Assembly (NCBI RefSeq): GCF_006345805.1
Contig: NC_043000.1
Span: 98,208,001-98,272,000, forward strand
DNA length: 64,000 bases
Reading direction: 5' to 3'
From: Octopus sinensis
Lineage: Eukaryota
Shown: in pieces, positions 33,216 to 62,915 of the stretch
Layout: every line of letters starts with the position of its first letter
Position numbering within the stretch: the stretch's first letter is position 1
Notes under the pieces: model-generated
Seen by the model: only the letters and a program-made list of their open reading frames with translations
Database searches by the model: none
What the model was told of the DNA's origin: nothing
Translations under genes and position numbers: made by a program

Positions 33216-34096
33216 CTCTTGTGTGTCCATAGCTTGCACTGGGTACACCATGTGGAATACCTGCCTGCACCTTTCCTACATATTCAGTAGGGCCATTTAC
33301 CTGAATGGGGTAGGGTCCAGTTTATTTATATGTATATATATATATATATTTATTTACACACACACACACACAACTGGCTTCTACACAGATTTTGTCTGCC
33401 AAATTCAGTCACCAAGTGACTGGTTGACCTGGAGCTGTACTGAAAGACACTTGCCCAAGGTTCCATGGAGCGTGACTGAACCTGAAACCACATGGTTGTA
33501 AAGTGAGCTTTCTAACTGCACAGTCTGTACCTATATCTTGTTGAAGATATGATAAATTCTCTAATGTTGGTGCTCCAATATAATGTAGCCAGTACTTTCT
33601 GTAAGGTGATTGGTGATAGGAAGTCTAAGTGTAGAAATCAAGGCAAAAATACCATTTTATGAATGAGCAAGACATGGTTCTCCAGCTTGTCTAGGAGATA
33701 AGTAACTTCAAATAAGAATTGACTTGATCTGTGACAACCAGTCTGACTCATGCTAACAAGAAAAATGAATGTAAAATGGCTGTATTGATGGTAGTGCCTA
33801 TATTAGTAAAGATGAGCTGGCTGGTGACATTCAACTATTTAGTTTCTTTTCTGGTCTTTTTCTTGAGAGAATTTGGTTTAATATTTGCAAATACTTTATA
33901 TATTTCGTATGCATACATTTGCAGTAGAGAAAGCATTTTATTGGAAGATAACCAACCTTGAAATATTATCATTGCATAAGATTGTGAGCTTGTCTGAAAT
34001 ATTTTATGAAAGTGTATACTAACCATATGAAAACGGAATCTTTAAGAATATGAAAATGTTGAAATTCAAATGTTCATTTCTTTTTTCTCGTTTCAG

Positions 34097-34351
34097 CACA
34101 TTTCAATTATAAGGTCTGGTTTCCCATTGGCAACCGCCGAAAAGGGTTAAAACATCAACGACTGAAAGCGTGAAGATTAAAAAAAAAAGAAGTGCCCAAT
34201 CCTCAAAAACTAGCACACACTGCACATCTGAGGATTGTCAGGAGTCTCCAGTATATAAAGGAAGGCTTCGACTGGGATAGAAAGACAAATAATTACTTAC
34301 TACTGTCTGCCTGTCCTCTTTGAAAGAATCAACATCACTTTTGGCAAAACA
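34097..34351 (+). other. CSDE1: CSDE1 5'UTR part of the start-codon exon
   Basis: Acceptor ttcttttttctcgtttcag| ends at 34096. No ATG before 34352. In-frame TAA at 34256-34258. Confidence 0.6.
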
Positions 34352-34390
34352 ATGTCTAACTCAAGGAAAACAACTAGTCCTCAGTGGAAG
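34352..34390 (+). CDS. CSDE1: CSDE1 coding exon 1: MSNSRKTTSPQWK
   Basis: aaaacaATG context with A at -3, upstream in-frame stop, donor AAG|GTTAGT, phase 0 joining the next exon in frame. Confidence 0.75.
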
Positions 34391-36221: not shown

Positions 36222-36356
36222 AATTTCCAGCCGCCAGCTCAGAATCCCTCCATTCTTTATAGCCAGAGAACACCAACTACAAACAATTCAATTGCTACTT
36301 CACCTAACGGCACAAGTAATGGAGTTCGACAAACTGGCTTTGTGGAAAAATTACTG
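36222..36356 (+). CDS. CSDE1: CSDE1 coding exon 2: NFQPPAQNP...GVRQTGFVEKLL (start of CSD1)
   Basis: ttttattgcag| ... |gtaagt. Matches vertebrate UNR RETGVIEKLL. Confidence 0.92.
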
Positions 36357-36772: not shown

Positions 36773-36898
36773 GCACCCTGTACTAAACATTTGATTCAAT
36801 TTTTCAAGAATTACAACTGTCTTTAATATCTTTCTGAACATCGTGTAATGGTTTGATTTGAACAGAAGTTTAATTAATCGTTAATTTGGAAGGAATTG

Positions 36899-37041
36899 GA
36901 TACAAAACTGTATGAAAAGTTTAACAATAATCAAACAAAAGCATGATTATTTAGGTACAAAATGTATGAAAAAGTACCTATATTTAGGTATAATATTTAA
37001 AATAACTTTCAGGAGAGGAACAATATAAAGTGAAGTTGGGT
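36899..37041 (+). repeat. 143-bp direct repeat, copy 1 (copy 2 at 38853-38995)
   Basis: Manual alignment gives 5 substitutions and no gaps. Confidence 0.9.
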
Positions 37042-37779: not shown

Positions 37780-39522
37780 GTGGTGGTGATGGTGGTGGAA
37801 CATTGGCAGAAATAGTTGATGCTAGACGTAGAGGGTATTGCAGTATTTATGGACAGAAAATGATGGGGTGATTGGAGAACAAATGTATAATTATTGCTTT
37901 AAAATAAGATTAAATTAGATTTCAAGAGAAGATGTAATGTTTCAGGTAGAACCCTTCTTCAAATATTATTTGCTATTTTTTCCCTTGTTTGCTATTGTAG
38001 ATGATTACTAGTTTAATTTTTTTCCTTGTTGCTTAAGGCAGTGAGAAGGCAAAATGATTAGCATGCTGGACAAAATATTTAGCAGCATTTTGTCAGTGTT
38101 TACATTCTGAGCTCAAATTCTTCCGCGGTTGACTTTACCTTCCGTCTTCACAGGGTTCATAAAATAAGAACCAGTCAAGTATGCGGTTGATGTAAGTGAC
38201 TTCCCCTCCACTCAAAAACTGTTGGGCCTGTGCCAAAATTAGTAACCATTATTGTTGTTGTTTAGCTTCAGGTTAGCTCTGATTGAATAGACCTTTGAAT
38301 AAATGTGTTCTAGCTGTGAGCATCCTCTTTATTTTTCTCTTTTTTTCTTCTTTGTGGGATATCATGATTATCATTGTCGTTTAATGTACACTTTCCATGC
38401 TGGCATGGGTTGGACAGTTTGACTGAGGACTAGCGAGCCAGAAGGCTGCACCAGGCTCCAGTCTGATCTGGCAAAGTTTCTACAGCTGGATGCCCTTCCT
38501 AACACCAACCACTCTGAGAGTGTAGTGGGTGCTTTTATGTGCCACTGGCACCGATTTGAGGGAGATTTGGCAGCTATTTTTTTTAGAAGTTAACATACCG
38601 TTCAGAGACTCCTTCATCAGCTTGTTTAGTGGAAAATAATTGTTGAGGATAGCAACATATATAACAAATAAATTAAATTTTATAATTTTTGCATCAGTGT
38701 TTAAAAACAAATTGTTCTATAGTGAAAAAACTTATGAAATAAATGAGTTTTAACATTTCTGGTAAAATACTGAAACTAATGCATTGCAAGAAAATTGTTT
38801 TGTATAATTTTATGAGCTACCTTTAGATACAAAAAGGTAACTCATATCCTTAGATACAAAACTGTATGAAAAGTTTAACAATAATCAAACAAAAGCATGA
38901 TTGTTTAGGTACAAAATGTATGAAAGAGTACCTATATTTAGATATAATATTTAAAATAACTTTCGGGAGAGGAACAATATAAAGTGCAGTTGGGTCATAT
39001 ACTCAAATAGTTGAACACAACTATTTGTCTCTTAGGTGCAAGCATTTGGACCTAATGTTTGTTCTAAGGATAATTTGTTTCTTTGGTGCGCTGCTGACAG
39101 TACTCCACAAGTCATGGCTTCTTTTGCGCCCCACCAGTCTTGGAGGCTCTGCAAAAAAAAAAAAAAAAAATTAAATCATGGCTGCTGCCCTTTCGCCTCT
39201 AAGTCTTATTAGAAAAAGTAACAGGTATTATTTCATATTGTAATAATGGTGGCGAGCTGGCAGAATCATTAGCTTACAGGGGGAAATGCTTAGTAGCATT
39301 TCATCAGTCCTTATGTTCTGAGTTCAAATTCTGTTGAGGTTGACTTTATCATTTATCCTTTTGGGGTTGATAAGTATCATTTGGGTACTAGGGTTGATGT
39401 AATCGACTTAACCAGCTTCCCTGGAATTGCTGGTCTTGTGCCAAAATTTGAAACTAATATTTAACTCTTGCCATTTGAAAAAAGACTATTTCTATGATTC
39501 TAATTTTCTTTTGTCTCTTCAG

Positions 39523-39619
39523 CATTCCTATGGTTTTATTCAGTGTAACGAAAGAGAGTCAAGAGTTTTCTTTCACTTCAGTGAATACAGTGGTAATGCG
39601 GAGAATGTCAAAGTTGGAG
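39523..39619 (+). CDS. CSDE1: CSDE1 coding exon 3: HSYGFIQCNERESRVFFHFSEYSGNAENVKVG (CSD1 RNP motifs)
   Basis: gtctcttcag| ... |gtaagg. YGFI and FFHF cold-shock motifs. Confidence 0.95.
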
Positions 39620-40505: not shown

Positions 40506-40666
40506 ATCCTGTTGAGTTTCAGTTGTCGTATGATCGACGAACTGGGAAGCGGATTGCATGTTCTGTGATAAAAATTGACCCTGGCGTATCCTCTCAAGAA
40601 ATTTTAAGTGAGGAACGTTTTCAAGGCTCTATAGTTCAAGAAGCAAAACCAGTTAAAGCCAAAAAT
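40506..40666 (+). CDS. CSDE1: CSDE1 coding exon 4: (D)PVEFQLSYDRRTGKRIAC...KAKN
   Basis: tttatgtag| ... |gtaagt. Matches UNR VEFEVSSDRRTGKPIA. Phase 1 to 0. Confidence 0.95.
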
Positions 40667-43452: not shown

Positions 43453-43610
43453 GGCACAGTATCAGGAAATCAGGATGGGCTTGGTAGAGTCACGTATCTA
43501 CACAATGGAGAATGTTTTTTCCTTCCTTATGGCTTAGAAGATGTAATTGATGGTTCTTCGAAATTGAAAGCTGGAGATCAAGTCAGATTTTATATTGCTT
43601 CTGATAAAAG
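43453..43610 (+). CDS. CSDE1: CSDE1 coding exon 5: GTVSGNQDGLGRVTYLHNGECFFLPYG...RFYIASDK (non-canonical CSD2)
   Basis: ttttgttatag| ... |gtgagt. Aligns with UNR GSVCYERNGEVFYLTY..GDKINF. Phase 0 to 2. Confidence 0.92.
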
Positions 43611-44545
43611 GTGAGTTGAACATTGCCTATATTGAAGTTATGGAAAGTCTGCTACCTTTTTGATTTTAAGTCTTTTGAAATCATTGTCCATATAGCTGTT
43701 GTGTGGTTTAGCAAGACTATGGACTTTGATATGTTTCTTTGTTGGTTTTGGTGGAATATACTATTTACATTGTAATAAGTCCAGTAACCAATCTTTGCTA
43801 AGTGTGGGCTTCAGCTGCCTAAAAACCAATTTTCTATTTCGCCATGAAATACTGTATATGACCTTATACTTGAGATTGTCCTTTGGGAGATTTACAGATA
43901 TGTTGACAAGCTAGAAATAAATTCTTAAAATTAGGAAATGTTCTCTTGAAATTAGGTTGATGACCTGATGCACTAGTTTGCTCCCATCACAATTATGATG
44001 CATGTAATAAAGGCTTTTGCTCCCTTATCACTTGTGTCATACTATTTTCTGTTAAAATGATATTTCAGATGTCTTGCAAATTTATGACTGCTTTTGCCAT
44101 AATTTTACATAAATATGCAAAGTATGTTAAAAATCTACTTTTGCCTTATCGCTGCCTAGATTTTATGTAGGCCCTGGCACTGTGCCAAGGAATTGTAAAT
44201 GTTTATACAGCATGAAGTCATTTTTTAATATCTATAATTTTCTATGTCACTTTTTACTGCCACTGAGATCAGAAATAGTAATGTGTGTGTTATCTTAGGT
44301 AAAATCAAAATAGTATCCCTCTACTTTTCCACAATCTCTGTGTGTGTGAATGAGAGAGAGAGAGAGGCACTCAATCCTTTATGATAATTAGTGTCTGTCA
44401 ATTAAATAGCAGGTATCATTTTTAAAAATAGAAGTAAGAAACATAAAATATGATGTTAATAGACTTATCAGTCTTTACTATTCTTGTAATGGTTTATCTG
44501 AATGTTAATTATATTCTGCAAATTTTTCTATGAAAATCATTTCAG

Positions 44546-44759
44546 AAATGGTAACATTAGAGCTCGAAGACTTGAAAGTGTCATGGTGCAAAATCAAGAG
44601 AAATATCAAGGTGTCGTTTGTTCGATGAAAGAGAACTTTGGCTTCATAGAGCGTTCTGATGTTGTGAAAGAAATATTTTTCCACTACAGTGAATATAAAG
44701 GCGATATCAGTGAGCTGCTTCTTGGAGATGACGTAGAATTTCAAATTCAGTCAAGAAGT
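44546..44759 (+). CDS. CSDE1: CSDE1 coding exon 6: ...YQGVVCSMKENFGFIERSDVVKEIFFHYSEYKGD...VEFQIQSRS (CSD3)
   Basis: atcatttcag| ... |gtaagt. Very close to UNR QGVVCAMKEAFGFIERGDVVKEIFFHYSE. Confidence 0.97.
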
Positions 44760-45929
44760 GTAAGTTGGACTTTTTTTTTAAACCTTCAATAGCTAACTAA
44801 ACAAATTATAAGTTGTTTTTAATGAGTTAGTTGGATATTAAATATATGGTTTTAACTTCATTCAGAATGTTACCATAGATTGTTATATATTGTTATATTG
44901 TTTTAGAAGCAGAACTTTTGAGCTGGGAAGTTGGAAATTTGGGCAAAATAATAAATTCTATCTTTCCATTTACTCTCACACATCCTTATATAATGTGGGT
45001 AGCCATATACTTGTGCTTGTCCTTTTATAATACTTTAGCCTCTCAACATCTGGTATAAAAGCACCTCCCCTCCCCCAATTCATTTCAGGGGCTTTTTCCT
45101 TTTCTTTGTCATGCAAGTTATTTGGGAACCTCTGTATTGTTAATTGTATAAAAAGGTACCTGTAAAACAGTTGACATTAGGAAGGGCATTCAACTGTAGA
45201 AACTGTGCCAAAACTGACATTGGAGCTCAACACAAACCTCTGGCTTGTTGGATTCTTTCAAACTGTCTAGTCCATGCTAACATGGAAAATGGACATTAGT
45301 TGATGATGATACTGCCTGTAATTTCAGGTCAAGAGTTTGATAAGTAACCTTGTGTTTGATGTTGTTGTCTAACATTTTGATACCAGTTTCACATTAGTCA
45401 AATTTGACATTATTTTTTTATTAGTTTGCTGATAGTTGCTTATTATAAACACCTGCTCAGCCTTGACTGAGATGACCTATGATGAACAGTGGTCGTACCA
45501 TATTCATTATTTTTTTGTTATTGTGTACTATTCTGTTTTTTTTTCTCTCTCTAGAATGGTAGTCTGTGATTTACGAGGAATTTGATTGTTATTTCTAGTA
45601 GATTAAGTGATTGTAAAATCTCTCTTGTTGGCTAATGGGATTGTTTGGTTCCTAGGCTACCAAATGTGGGATTGATGGTTGATATTCTGTTACTGTAGCT
45701 ATGTCCCTGTCAAAAGTCTTTTAGATCTTATTATTTCTGTCAGTTCACTTAACTTTAAAGAGCATACTTCTTCACTTTGGATGGCAGCAACACTGTTGTG
45801 CTGAATAAGGATTAAGTGTTGCATGCATTCTAAAACCCTGCTGATGGTATATGTTTCTGAATGTGTGTTACATGTTGTCCTGATATAATAAATATGTCAC
45901 TTAATAATGTTAAAATTTTCCTTTTGTAG

Positions 45930-45986
45930 AGACAATGGGATTATTCATTAAATAGCCACAAAAACAGTAACCAACCAGAAAATGAT
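45930..45986 (+). CDS. CSDE1: Candidate 57-nt cassette exon: RQWDYSLNSHKNSNQPEND
   Basis: ttttccttttgtag| ... gat|gtaagt. 19 open codons, phase 0/0, inside a phase-0 intron. No recognisable homology. Confidence 0.5.
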
Positions 45987-46774
45987 GTAAGTGTATAAAT
46001 TTTATTTCAGTGATCTTTGTTTTTCAAATGAGTATGTTTCATTTTACTATAGTATTTGTCATTCAAACTAAGCAAGTTTTACATTGAAATGATACCATGC
46101 CACTAATGATTTCAGAATGAAACTATCACTTCAGCATGAGAATAATGATTTCAAAGTGTGATTATCTCATAAAGATTTATTTAATAGAAAATATAACATT
46201 AAAACAACATTAGTATTGTTAACGATGTGAACTCACTTAGTTAATTATAAGTTCATGTCAGTCAAGCAGCAAGACATAAACCTCATCTTATAGCTATAAT
46301 ACTTTCCAGTTTGTTTGATGAAAAGTACTGCATTAGCACTCAGTGCTAATTTTCTGAGAATATAACAGTTATGTATAGCTTGTATGGGAACTTCAGTTCC
46401 ACAGTGAGCAAGTACATTACTGAATATTTAAATATATTTGTGGCTTTAAAACTGTTCAGTAAAATGATGAAAATTTTTAGGCTGCACCTTTTGTTCGTAT
46501 GCTGTGAAATCTTCATTACTTTAAAAGGCCTCAACCTAGCAGAAACATTACCCCACTGATCAAAATACATAGGGGAAGAAATACCAGCTTTGTATTCTGA
46601 GTTCAAATTCAATCCTTTTGAACTCAATAAAAGAAGTACTAGTTGAGCTTGCTTGCTGAGTTTGTAAAGGGCAATAACTCATAGGTTTTAGGGATTAATT
46701 CTGTTATATGACTATAATATAAATATGACTAGGCTTGTGTTTGTATGTTTTGGTTATCTATATGTAAAACTTGT

Positions 46775-47025
46775 GGAGGCACGTGGCTTAGTGGTTAGGG
46801 TGTCAGCATCATGATTGCAAGATTGTGGTTTCGATTCCTGGACCAGGTGACGTGTTGTGTTCTTGAGCAAAACACTTCATTTCACATTGCTCCATTTCAC
46901 TCAGCTGGCAAAAATGAGTAATGCTGTGATGGACAGGTGTCCCGTCCAGCTAAGGAACACATACACCATTGAAACTGGGAAACTGGGCCCATGAGCCTGG
47001 CTAGGCTTTAAAAGGGTGCATTTAT
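46775..47025 (+). mobile_element. tRNA-derived SINE (third family)
   Basis: A box tggcttagtgg and B box ggtttcgattcc followed by a non-tRNA body. A related reversed copy lies near 29460-29660. Confidence 0.75.
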
Positions 47026-47717
47026 TTACTTTTTTATATGTAAAACTTATTTGTTTTGGGGATTGAAGTAATACTACTCTTTCATTATGATGAACTTCTA
47101 CCTGAACTTGATTAACATAGATCTGATTTTCAATAGATGGCATGGTTTTTCTGATAGCTGAACTTTATTTTCGGCTGCTATGAAATGGAATCTTATAAAA
47201 GGAGAGTTAATATACCTGGCATGCTGTCACTGATCTGATATAGCTAAGTAATTGAAAATATTGTGATTTGTACATGGTGCAGATTATTTTTGGGTGGAAT
47301 CTGTTTTATATTGTTAGTTAAACAGACATTGGGTAAAAAGCTTTGAGAAAATACAATAATCTTTGTTACAAGCAGTTAGCAGCGGAGAAAGTCCCTTAAG
47401 TGGCAAACTATGCCACTAAATCTTAATGAAGTAACATCTAGAATTTTGAGGCAAAAAAAGAAACTGCATTCCAGATCTTTGCTGGCTCAGACATGGCTGT
47501 ATTACTTAGAATTTTGTTTCACAATCATGGTCCTGGGTAATTGAGTTTCTTGTAACTGAATAGACACAAACTGCATAAGTCCTCAAATGAACTTGACCTG
47601 GGTTGGAGACCTTTTCTCCTCCGACCAAATTATAAAACCAGCCCAATAAAACAGATCTAAAATATACGAATCATGTTTTTTCTTACTACTACTTATGAAT
47701 GATCTTATCATTTCCAG

Positions 47718-47887
47718 GGTAGGGAAGTTGCTGTAAATATTTCACGATTACCTGAAGGAACTGTGATATTCGAAGATGTTGCTATTGAAAGCATAAACGG
47801 GAGAATTCTGAAAACCTTAAAAAATTCCAATAAAGGTCGTCAAGGAGATCCCCTTTGTGGAAGAATTGTTTATGAAGTAGATAACCG
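47718..47887 (+). CDS. CSDE1: CSDE1 coding exon 7: GREVAVNISRLPEGTVIFEDV...GDPLCGRIVYEVDN
   Basis: atttccag| ... |gtatgt. Matches UNR GKEVATDVRLLPQGTVIFED..NDPLPGRI. Confidence 0.95.
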
Positions 47888-48544
47888 GTATGTTTTTATG
47901 TATATATGTGTGTCTGTCTGTGTGTGTGTGTGTATGTATATACATATATATATATATATATATATGAATGATCATTATTGTTTTAACATGTATTTTTCTA
48001 TGCTTGCATGGACTTTCTACAGATTGATACCTTCCTATTGCTAACCCTCACTTGTTTCCAAGCAAAATAATATTTCCCCATGACCAGACATGTTTACAGG
48101 GAAGATTATGATAGTGATGCTTGTTTATAACAATCCTATGATATCAAGACATAAAGACACACATTTATCCCAAGTGTACATCAACCTGGGGATATCAGTA
48201 GGATTTGCACATAACCATCTGTCATTTCTCCTGTTGGACTTTTGATTTTGGTAAAAGTTTTTCTCATTAGAGAACTAAAGCATGCCATATTTGTGTGTGT
48301 ATATATATATATATATATAAAAATTGAAAAAATAGAGTCAACAGGAAGGAGTACGTTTAGACAGCTATTTGATAAACACTACACATGTTTTGATACTTCA
48401 TAGACCCATATATATACAGGATTTAAATTAAGCAATGGTTTTAATTCTAAGGGTGAGCGTACTTTATTTTGTACTCTAATATGGTTCTAACGGCATACTT
48501 TAAGTTTATATATATATATAGTGAGAGAGAGAGAAGTGTTGGCA

Positions 48545-49363: not shown

Positions 49364-49535
49364 GCAAGTTGAAATTCCATTTGGAGACAAGGACCAAAAG
49401 GGAGACTTCACATTACAGGTTGACGATCTTGTTGCATTTAATATTGCTACAGACCGCAGAGATGGATTACAACGAGCTACACAAATTGAACTTCTTGACT
49501 GTACCTTTGAGAAAAGCAAAGAAACCAGAGAGGTG
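49364..49535 (+). CDS. CSDE1: CSDE1 coding exon 8: QVEIPFGDKDQKGDFTL...FNIATDRRDGLQRAT...ETREV
   Basis: tttttaacatag| ... gtg|gttagt. Matches UNR ELPFGDKD..FNISTDRRDKLERAT. Confidence 0.95.
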
Positions 49536-50561: not shown

Positions 50562-50705
50562 GGCATTGTTGCTACTCTGAAGGAAGGATATGGTTTCATA
50601 CAATGTGCTGATCGCGACCTCAGAGTTTTCTTCCATTTTAGTGAAATGCTTGATCAAACTAAGGAGTTGAAGCTGCAGGATGAAGTTGAATTCACAGTAG
50701 TACAA
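50562..50705 (+). CDS. CSDE1: CSDE1 coding exon 9: GIVATLKEGYGFIQCADRDLRVFFHFSEML...VEFTVVQ (CSD5)
   Basis: ttattcaacag| ... |gttagt. YGFI and FFHF motifs. Confidence 0.96.
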
Positions 50706-52567: not shown

Positions 52568-52700
52568 GATCCTTCATCACCAAATAAGCAAATAGCTATT
52601 CGCATTAAAATGCTTCCCAAACGAACACTCTCTCTTACAATTTCTACTGAAAAATATATTGGAACAATTGACCGTGAGCCTGCAACACACAAAAGCCCAG
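52568..52700 (+). CDS. CSDE1: CSDE1 coding exon 10: DPSSPNKQIAIRIKMLPKRTL...EPATHKSP
   Basis: ctccacttcag| ... cag|gtaggt. Matches UNR AIRIKKLPKGTV. Confidence 0.93.
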
Positions 52701-55523: not shown

Positions 55524-55645
55524 GCAAAAACAAAGAAGGGGAATCTGGAAATATAATATATGACTATGAAGGTGCTATTCAACAAATTCCATATTACTTA
55601 AAAGATTTAATAGACCAGAAGGGTCCTCCAAGATATGGTGATAAG
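55524..55645 (+). CDS. CSDE1: CSDE1 coding exon 11: KNKEGESGNIIYDYEG...PRYGDK
   Basis: ctgttttgcag| ... aag|gtaaag. Matches UNR EDGIIAYDDCG..PQIGDK. Confidence 0.92.
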
Positions 55646-55917: not shown

Positions 55918-56090
55918 ATTGAATTTAGCATTGGTGAATCGTCTAGAAATGGCCAAAAGAGAGCTGTCAATATAAGAGTAGTTCTTCGCAATGTTGCTGG
56001 CAAATGCCAAGGCTTCATTGCTACATTGAAAGACAACTATGGATTCATTGAAAATGCTGATCATGAGAAGGAAGTTTTCTTTCATTTCAG
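55918..56090 (+). CDS. CSDE1: CSDE1 coding exon 12: IEFSIGE...QGFIATLKDNYGFIENADHEKEVFFHF (CSD7)
   Basis: tttttcattag| ... cag|gtaagt. Matches UNR ATLKDNFGFIETANHDKEIFFHY. Confidence 0.96.
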
Positions 56091-56339: not shown

Positions 56340-56466
56340 CTCTATTGAGAATGATCAGTTAGAATTTAATCTTGGCGATGAAGTAGAATATACATTGGCT
56401 AAAAAAGGAGCCAAGTTGAGTGCTGAAAACATCAAAAAACTTCCTAAAGGCACTGTTTCACCCGAG
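56340..56466 (+). CDS. CSDE1: CSDE1 coding exon 13: SIEND...LGDEVEYTLAKKGAKLSAENIKKLPKGTVSPE
   Basis: tttaacacag| ... gag|gtaagc. Matches UNR LGDMVEYSLSKGKGNKVSAE. Confidence 0.95.
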
Positions 56467-59482: not shown

Positions 59483-59591
59483 GAAATTATTTGGGAAAAA
59501 GGGACCCTACAGGGAAAGATTATTCGACCCTTACGCATTGTCAATCCTGAACAGGATGAATATAGTGGTCTTGTACAAGTTGGTTTGGATG
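59483..59591 (+). CDS. CSDE1: CSDE1 coding exon 14: EIIWEKGTLQGKIIRPLRIVNPEQDEYSGLVQVGLD
   Basis: tttcattttcag| ... |gtaagt. Matches UNR GKVIRPLRSVDPTQTEYQGMI. Confidence 0.95.
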
Positions 59592-61567: not shown

Positions 61568-61752
61568 AAGATGAAGAGGAAGTGTACCAATATGGTATCA
61601 CTAGCCTGGCTGATAAACGAGATTTCCTCCAGAAGGGTGATGTTGTAAAGTTCCAGATTGCATCAGTGAAAGCCACTGGGAAAAAACGAGCTGTTTGTGT
61701 GGCTGCTATGCGTAGCTATGTGCGTGCTAAAGTTGATTCTGTGAAGGGATTG
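61568..61752 (+). CDS. CSDE1: CSDE1 coding exon 15: DEEEVYQYGITSLADKRDFLQKGDVVKFQI...RAKVDSVKGL
   Basis: tgtgttacag| ... |gtaagt. Matches UNR VYPFGIVGMANKGDCLQKGESVKFQL..RATVECVKDQ. Confidence 0.95.
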
Positions 61753-62751: not shown

Positions 62752-62915
62752 TTTGGCTTCCTGAATTATGAAGTTGAAGATGGCAAAAAGCTATTCTTTC
62801 ATATGACTGAAGTCCATGACAGTATTGAGCTGCAACCTGGTGATGAAGTTGAATTTGTAGTTGTGCAGAATCAAAGAAATGCCAAATTTTCAGCTTGTAG
62901 TTTGCGTAAAATTAC
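62752..62915 (+). CDS. CSDE1: CSDE1 coding exon 16: [21 protein letters not shown]...FSACSLRKI (CSD9); gene continues beyond the window
   Basis: ttttctttcag| ... |gtaagt. Matches UNR [21 protein letters not shown]. No stop codon reached. Confidence 0.96.

Follow-up and report, generated by a model that had tools for sequence, protein, structure and literature searches.

UNR/CSDE1 is a conserved translational regulator. In human and Drosophila, it is composed of five canonical and four non-canonical cold-shock domains (CSDs) in alternation (PMC7383231), and in the revised nine-domain numbering the canonical domains are CSDs 1, 3, 5, 7 and 9 (PMC7383231). Alternative exons have been described in mammalian CSDE1, namely exon 3, which encodes an N-terminal extension, and exon 6, which lies in the non-RNA-binding ncCSD2 (PMC12530126). 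At the turn between strands beta4 and beta5 of CSD3 the human and fly proteins are contiguous (RN/GKEVA), whereas the cephalopod proteins have 19 extra residues at this position. We found no description in the literature of an insertion in CSD3, of cephalopod CSDE1 isoforms or of the octopod exon that encodes these residues.

Here we analyze a 64,000-nt stretch of genomic DNA from Octopus sinensis (hereafter, the window) that includes part of the UNR/CSDE1 gene. The reading that best explains the observations, and that we consider very probable, is that a 57-nt segment of this gene is a real and already annotated exon, specific to cephalopods and constitutive-like in octopods, that decapodiforms have a different, alternative 57-nt exon in its place, and that the encoded loop has a role that we infer from its position. 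The contrast between octopods and decapodiforms at the CSD3 site appears to be undescribed, although the exon itself is annotated.

The UNR/CSDE1 locus of Octopus sinensis

The gene is unambiguously the UNR/CSDE1 orthologue. The best PDB matches of its product are fly Unr and human CSDE1, the product shares 47-88% identity with CSDE1 of molluscs, annelids, arthropods and chordates, and in a protein search with the full-length query the part encoded in the window was 100% identical to XP_014783652.1 of O. bimaculoides. Positions 32352-64000 of the window are 100% identical to O. sinensis CM016862.1 (GCA_006345805.1). Pfam recognizes five PF00313 stretches and four PF23456 stretches (CSDE1-type non-canonical CSDs) in the spliced product, and these alternate as in the human and Drosophila proteins. 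The insertion junction lies within the second canonical domain, which is CSD3 of the nine.

A 15-exon model was built by tblastn and splice-site inspection, with a human CSDE1 sequence that served as a probe only. The model has a single open frame from 36222 to 62915, and an RNA contig supplied a 5′ exon beyond it, at 34096-34390. Based on the model, the Pfam matches and the exon blocks of the RNA contig L020 (see below), the gene extends from 34096 to 64000 on the forward strand and is partial, with its 3′ end past the window. The first to eighth exons are located at 34096-34390, 36222-36356, 39523-39619, 40506-40666, 43453-43610, 44546-44759, 45930-45986 and 47718-47887, and the ninth to seventeenth at 49364-49535, 50562-50705, 52568-52700, 55524-55645, 55918-56090, 56340-56466, 59483-59591, 61568-61752 and 62752-62915, all on the forward strand.

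The constitutive exon at 44546-44759 encodes a linker and strands beta1-beta4 of CSD3 and ends in ...VEFQIQSRS/gtaagt, in phase 0. The constitutive exon at 47718-47887 begins with cag/GREVAVNI and encodes beta5 of CSD3 and the start of ncCSD4. Both are supported by the model and by L020. The upstream intron (44760-45929, 1170 nt) and the downstream intron (45987-47717, 1731 nt), which flank the 57-nt exon on the forward strand, do not align to Argonauta or cuttlefish. Dispersed repeats occur in introns of the gene at 45170-45310, 36896-37041 and 38850-38995, and none of them overlaps the 57-nt exon. Further copies of the first, of 70-86% identity, are found in the loci of O. sinensis and O. 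vulgaris, and the other two are copies, 96% identical, of one 146-nt element. A (TG)n(TA)n microsatellite at 47900-47965 starts 13 nt past the donor of the exon at 47718-47887, and similar tracts are found elsewhere in the locus.

A 57-nt exon in the third cold-shock domain

The segment at 45930-45986 (forward strand) is a 57-nt coding exon of phase 0/0. Its frame 0 encodes RQWDYSLNSHKNSNQPEND without a stop, corresponding to residues 269-287 of the 836-aa octopus CSDE1, and both other frames contain stops. It is bordered by ...ttttccttttgtag upstream and gtaagt downstream. The acceptor reads ttaaaattttccttttgtag/AGA and the donor GAT/gtaagt. The 3′ splice region (45900-45929, forward strand) includes a candidate branch point, cttaat, proposed by resemblance to the consensus, the polypyrimidine tract ttttcctttt and the acceptor tag, and is free of AG between branch point and acceptor. 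The 5′ splice site gtaagt (45987-45992, forward strand), with GAT on its exon side, is the same in O. vulgaris and Argonauta.

The initial annotation, made from the sequence alone, had proposed an open 57-nt segment with a GTAAGT donor, phase 0/0 and the flanks VEFQIQSRS and GREVAVNI, and all of these features were confirmed. Its statement that the segment is not visibly repeat-derived also holds within the window, as no second copy of the region 45400-46500 was found within the 64-kb window and no repeat family is present at the exon; an origin by exonization of a transposon was rejected within the window on the same grounds.

The splice sites are unexceptional for this gene, with acceptor and donor position weight matrix scores near the median of its real sites. 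Decoy pseudo-exons were counted with two splice matrices, on shuffled sequence and on the antisense strand, and the outcome depends on the matrix. Across the introns (24.4 kb), 5 AG...GT pairs under a gene-tuned matrix and 41 under a generic one match both scores of the segment, and just 1 or 2 of these pairs are open and frame-preserving. An equally good decoy that is open and frame-preserving appeared in 0 of 40 dinucleotide-shuffled sets with the gene-tuned matrix and in about 38% of sets with the generic matrix. The open frame itself comprises only 22 codons and is closed on its upstream side by the TAG of the acceptor. The segment has an unusually high A content, and its GC content (32%) is lower than that of every other exon of the gene. 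Sequence statistics alone are thus ambiguous, and the reality of the exon is settled by transcripts and conservation.

Annotation, transcripts and conservation in octopods

The 19 residues are present in annotated CSDE1 proteins of O. sinensis (XP_029634673.1/XP_036358152.1), O. vulgaris (CAI9721198.1), O. bimaculoides (XP_014783652.1) and Argonauta hians (GAB1606779.1). The insert is identical in O. sinensis and O. vulgaris, and in A. hians it reads RTWDYSLNSHKNSNQPEND, with 18 of 19 residues identical. The cluster of octopod CSDE1 proteins at 90% identity, in which O. sinensis and O. vulgaris share one sequence and O. bimaculoides has another, also includes an insert-bearing protein from a 2.9-kb Logan contig. 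The exon is therefore already known: publicly available protein models in RefSeq and GenBank include it for three Octopus species and for Argonauta. The A. hians protein additionally contains a 9-aa tandem duplication (YQGVVCAMK-YQGVVCSMK) just upstream of CSD3, which stems either from an artefact of the gene model or from a short duplication in the genome and accounts for its length of 845 rather than 836 aa.

Splicing of the exon was observed in a Logan RNA contig (L020, run SRR3401912) from a related Octopus, which is 98-99% identical to the window and spliced as in the model. Its alignment blocks are 44544-44759, 45930-45987 and 47718-47887, and the exon forms its own block at 100% identity. 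The boundaries are 44759/45930 and 45986/47718, the junctions that had been predicted from the genomic sequence. Inclusion was thus seen in four of four octopod sequences, comprising genome annotations and a single assembled RNA contig. An 817-aa skipping isoform is absent from the 90% protein cluster, and a 331-aa query representing the skipping form returned no cephalopod fragments in a search that seems confined to targets between about 0.55 and 1.75 times as long as the query. Exact scans of metagenome contigs, in which no octopod data were found, gave 0 hits for the skipping junction and 0 for the inclusion junction, and an exact look-up of the open reading frames of the window gave no match. 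Inclusion in octopods is probably constitutive or predominant, on a very thin sampling of octopod RNA.

The O. vulgaris sequence is uninformative for conservation because it is 98% identical throughout. Between Octopus and Argonauta, the exon is the only part that aligns between the flanking exons (87% over 76 nt). In a global alignment of the introns, the exon window reaches 86-91% identity, whereas the mean is 21% and the best of the other windows reaches 58%. Argonauta retains the acceptor AG, the polypyrimidine tract, the gtaagt donor and the frame, so that the splice sites and the reading frame are conserved in a relative, as the initial annotation had anticipated for a functional exon. 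The Argonauta acceptor lies at the same position and reads tttcctttgcag, and the sequence further upstream has diverged. Beyond the exon, the alignment continues for only ~13 nt on the upstream side and 6 nt on the downstream side, and conserved intronic flanks were not found between the two genera.

Within the exon there are 8 nt differences from Argonauta, of which 5 are synonymous third-position changes and the remainder fall in one codon (Q to T). This excess of synonymous changes is significant (Fisher p 2e-5 to 6e-4), and the dN/dS of ~0.03 equals that of the adjacent constitutive exon at 47718-47887 (0.03). The octopod exon carries the hallmarks of a constitutive exon, and its peptide is under strong purifying selection.

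Taxonomic distribution of the insert

To assess the distribution of the insert, we aligned 128 full-length sequences of orthologues, 9 from cephalopods and 119 from other animals. A 19-aa insert at the CSD3 junction occurs in 9 of the 128, all of them cephalopod, and 116 of the 119 non-cephalopod sequences are contiguous there. The contiguous groups comprise gastropods, bivalves, a chiton, annelids, a brachiopod, nemerteans, hemichordates, echinoderms, amphioxus and arthropods. The solved structure of the human domain (PDB 2YTX) is likewise contiguous at the CSD3 hairpin, so the earlier claim of continuity in vertebrate UNR holds for human. The other three of the 119 have short additions. Two amphioxus (Branchiostoma) isoforms (P0215 and P0223) gain VRN and read TRN-VRN-GKEVA, possibly through use of an alternative donor 9 nt downstream, and a Logan sequence (P0227) has 6 extra residues. 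The phase-0 intron in the CSD3 hairpin seems to give rise to isoform variation repeatedly.

The position of this intron is shared with arthropod orthologues, which also have a phase-0 intron in the CSD3 hairpin. Open reading frames on arthropod-like genomic contigs (P0001, P0004-P0006, P0011 and P0014) read through a short intron at the exact junction. Their extra residues start with V-S or V-G, as expected from translation of a gta or gtg donor, and end with Q, from cag. Because these frames read through an intron, its position must be ancient and common to arthropods and molluscs. Among the orthologues compared, in which cephalopods are represented by Octopus, Argonauta and decapodiforms, an exon at the CSD3 site is restricted to cephalopods, specifically coleoids. 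The insert was accordingly lineage-specific, as first suggested. The proposal of a candidate lineage-specific exon stood in that the exon is real and confined to one lineage, and failed in its novelty, as annotated octopod proteins already include it.

A positional counterpart in decapodiforms

Exactly where octopods have their insert, cuttlefish- and squid-like sequences also have 19 extra residues, but different ones, TVAHDQKSQCQGSVVTKSE with two variants. Both isoforms are annotated in Acanthosepion pharaonis, with the insert in CAE1158589.1 and without it in CAE1158585.1. Decapodiform RNA contigs of the skipping form come from 92 sample blocks, and those of inclusion forms from a dozen. 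An inclusion contig (L018) and a skipping contig (L008) are 99.8-100% identical outside the alternative blocks, and each maps exon by exon onto the A. pharaonis genome. The decapodiform cassette is therefore truly alternative, with both RNA forms present in one cuttlefish, A. pharaonis.

In genomic sequence, the cassette is 57 nt long and of phase 0/0 (positions 7517-7573 of contig L007; also in L001-L003). Its acceptor is attttttgcag and its donor, GAG/gtcagc, is non-consensus. Two Sepia-like genomes, whose identity elsewhere is 92-93%, match perfectly over a 225-nt block that contains the cassette. The dN/dS of the cassette is 0.13-0.46 in three species, compared with 0.05-0.28 for the flanking exons, and one pair of decapodiforms differs in the cassette by 0 synonymous and 6 nonsynonymous changes. 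A weaker donor, conserved flanks, relaxed constraint and the occurrence of both isoforms are together the hallmarks of a regulated alternative exon. The comparison of donor strength between the octopod and decapodiform exons (9.6 vs 5.5 with the gene-tuned matrix, 7.2 vs 7.9 with the generic one) depends on the matrix and is therefore given little weight.

The A. pharaonis cassette thus resembles the octopod exon in intron, phase, 57-nt length and the residue position of insertion, and differs from it in having an unrelated sequence, no aromatic residues, a gtcagc donor, conserved flanks and demonstrated skipping. Identity between the octopod and decapodiform exons is 14/57 at the DNA level, where the null mean is 15.5, and 1/19 at the residue level, with BLOSUM scores no better than those of shuffled sequences. 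Searches with the octopus exon (blastn and tblastn) gave no match in the cuttlefish-like contigs L001-L003; since the decapodiform cassette is present in them, similarity is lacking there rather than an exon. No relic of the other lineage's cassette was found in the octopod intron or in the decapodiform intron.

A further exon of the gene varies among decapodiform transcripts. The exon at 50562-50705 (forward strand; 144 nt, phase 0/0) encodes 48 aa (GIVATLKEGYGF...EVEFTVVQ) that form the core of the third canonical domain, CSD5, and its decapodiform counterpart is at 14159-14302 of L007. RNA contigs of three decapodiform species (L018, L021 and L022-L031), whose proteins are 790-791 aa long, lack it, and decapodiforms therefore have a frame-preserving isoform that lacks most of CSD5. 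An apparent coupling between skipping of this exon and inclusion of the 57-nt cassette may be an assembly artefact. The Octopus CSD5 exon has the weakest donor in the gene (CAA/gttagt), and no skipping of it was seen in octopods.

Status and origin of the octopod exon

That the segment is a genuine coding exon is virtually certain. It could have been a chance pseudo-exon, an AG...GT pair around an accidental open frame that gene predictors wrongly included: decoys of equal quality arise in the ~38% of shuffled intron sets noted above for the generic matrix, a 19-codon open frame is about 25% likely in this composition by a rough estimate, and the GC content is intron-like. However, the segment is contained in the spliced RNA contig L020 and is the only conserved island relative to Argonauta, where both splice sites persist and synonymous changes are in strong excess, and we rejected this explanation as extremely improbable. 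Given that the exon is real, octopods could also use it as a regulated cassette that is left out in certain tissues or at certain stages. Its positional counterpart in cuttlefish is alternatively spliced, with skipping forms in many sample blocks alongside inclusion forms; short, frame-preserving, loop-encoding exons are typically regulated; and the octopod transcript sampling is tiny. We nonetheless regard octopod regulation as unlikely, as all four octopod sequences include the exon and the protein cluster holds no 817-aa isoform, the gtaagt donor is of consensus type in both Octopus and Argonauta, intronic flanks are not conserved between these genera, and the dN/dS equals that of a constitutive exon. 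The original suggestion of a cassette exon giving a tissue-specific isoform is thus unsupported in octopods.

With regard to origin, we lean slightly towards a single gain in the coleoid ancestor, in which a fast-evolving exon of a minor splice form was later fixed and constrained in octopods and is still alternative in decapodiforms. Young exons usually begin as alternative and fast-evolving and then become constitutive, a course described by the exon-birth model. A single gain would explain why the exons of both lineages occupy one intron and agree in phase (0/0) and in their 57-nt length, and the relaxed constraint on the decapodiform exon (omega 0.13-0.46, and the pair with nonsynonymous changes only) fits this usual life history. 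The lack of similarity between the two exons in nucleotides and residues, and of relics in either intron, argues against it. These same observations could be accounted for if unrelated intronic sequences were exonized independently in octopods and decapodiforms and the equal lengths were coincidental, which we think possible but hold to be the less probable course. Similarity is wholly absent even though each exon is well conserved in its own lineage, and the +VRN of amphioxus and the +6 aa of another taxon at the same intron suggest a permissive site that is used recurrently. Against independent origins, the occurrence of an equal 57 nt in the same intron is improbable, at a few percent among frame-preserving short exons by a rough estimate.

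Structure and proposed role of the loop

The insert interrupts the Pfam CSD match after profile position 56 of 66, at the beta4-beta5 turn (hairpin) of CSD3. The 836-aa insert-bearing protein was modeled with AlphaFold2 from an 88-sequence alignment. Strands beta4 (259-267) and beta5 (289-297) are in high-confidence blocks and residues 270-286 have pLDDT below 50. The strands being kept, the CSD fold is predicted to tolerate the insert. The model renders the insert as a flexible loop, although its low pLDDT could partly reflect an alignment that is shallow in this region rather than true disorder. Pfam and AlphaFold2 thus agree with the initial annotation in placing 19 residues in the hairpin between the last two beta strands of CSD3, and the structure prediction that it had called for, run with the insert, gave intact CSD3 strands and a low-confidence loop.

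R267, directly before the insert, is invariant in 88 of 88 orthologues. In an alignment with the sequence of Bacillus subtilis CspB, the junction is presumably between N55 and R56. Arg56 of CspB touches the phosphate backbone of the bound oligonucleotide, and the flexibility of the loop that carries it is needed for high-affinity binding (PMC8417293). The exon, spliced between 44759 and 47718, adds RQWDYSLNSHKNSNQPEND to the beta4-beta5 turn, and we hypothesize that the resulting loop lies at the edge of the RNA-binding platform of CSD3. Because it splits the turn that carries a phosphate-contacting arginine in the bacterial prototype, this loop probably modulates RNA affinity or specificity, or provides a docking site for partners. 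The octopod segment R(Q/T)WDYSLNSHKNSNQPEND is strictly conserved and includes two aromatic residues, which suggests that its role depends on its sequence and that it is more than a spacer. Its conserved W-D-Y portion could add a stacking or docking surface.

A more extended scenario, which we offer as speculative and consider rather improbable as a whole, is that the coleoid ancestor gained the 57-nt exon, that octopods fixed it as a constitutive exon for a strongly constrained W-D-Y loop that alters the choice of UNR targets, and that decapodiforms keep a version of unrelated appearance as a regulated switch. If true, the octopod loop would extend the RNA-binding platform or form a partner-docking site, and the choice of UNR targets would differ between clades.

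Comparison with known systems

The pattern at this site is that of a constitutive-looking and constrained loop in octopods and an optional, faster-evolving and unrelated one in decapodiforms, of equal length and position. It offers a compact natural case of how new exons become fixed and a natural test of how the beta4-beta5 loop tunes RNA binding by a CSD, and its interest is modest, mainly for specialists in the evolution of splicing and in cephalopod RNA biology. With the exon-birth model the locus shares a short, frame-preserving, loop-encoding exon that is limited to one clade, within which one branch has it as an alternative, fast-evolving exon and the other as a fixed and constrained one. 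It differs from that model in that no transposon or duplication source was found and the homology of the exons of the two branches is tentative. Like the frame-preserving optional exons 3 and 6 of mammalian CSDE1 (PMC12530126), the octopod exon keeps the frame and alters a cold-shock domain of this protein. The mammalian exons lie outside CSD3 and are truly alternative (PMC12530126), whereas the octopod exon is located within CSD3 and appears to be constitutive.
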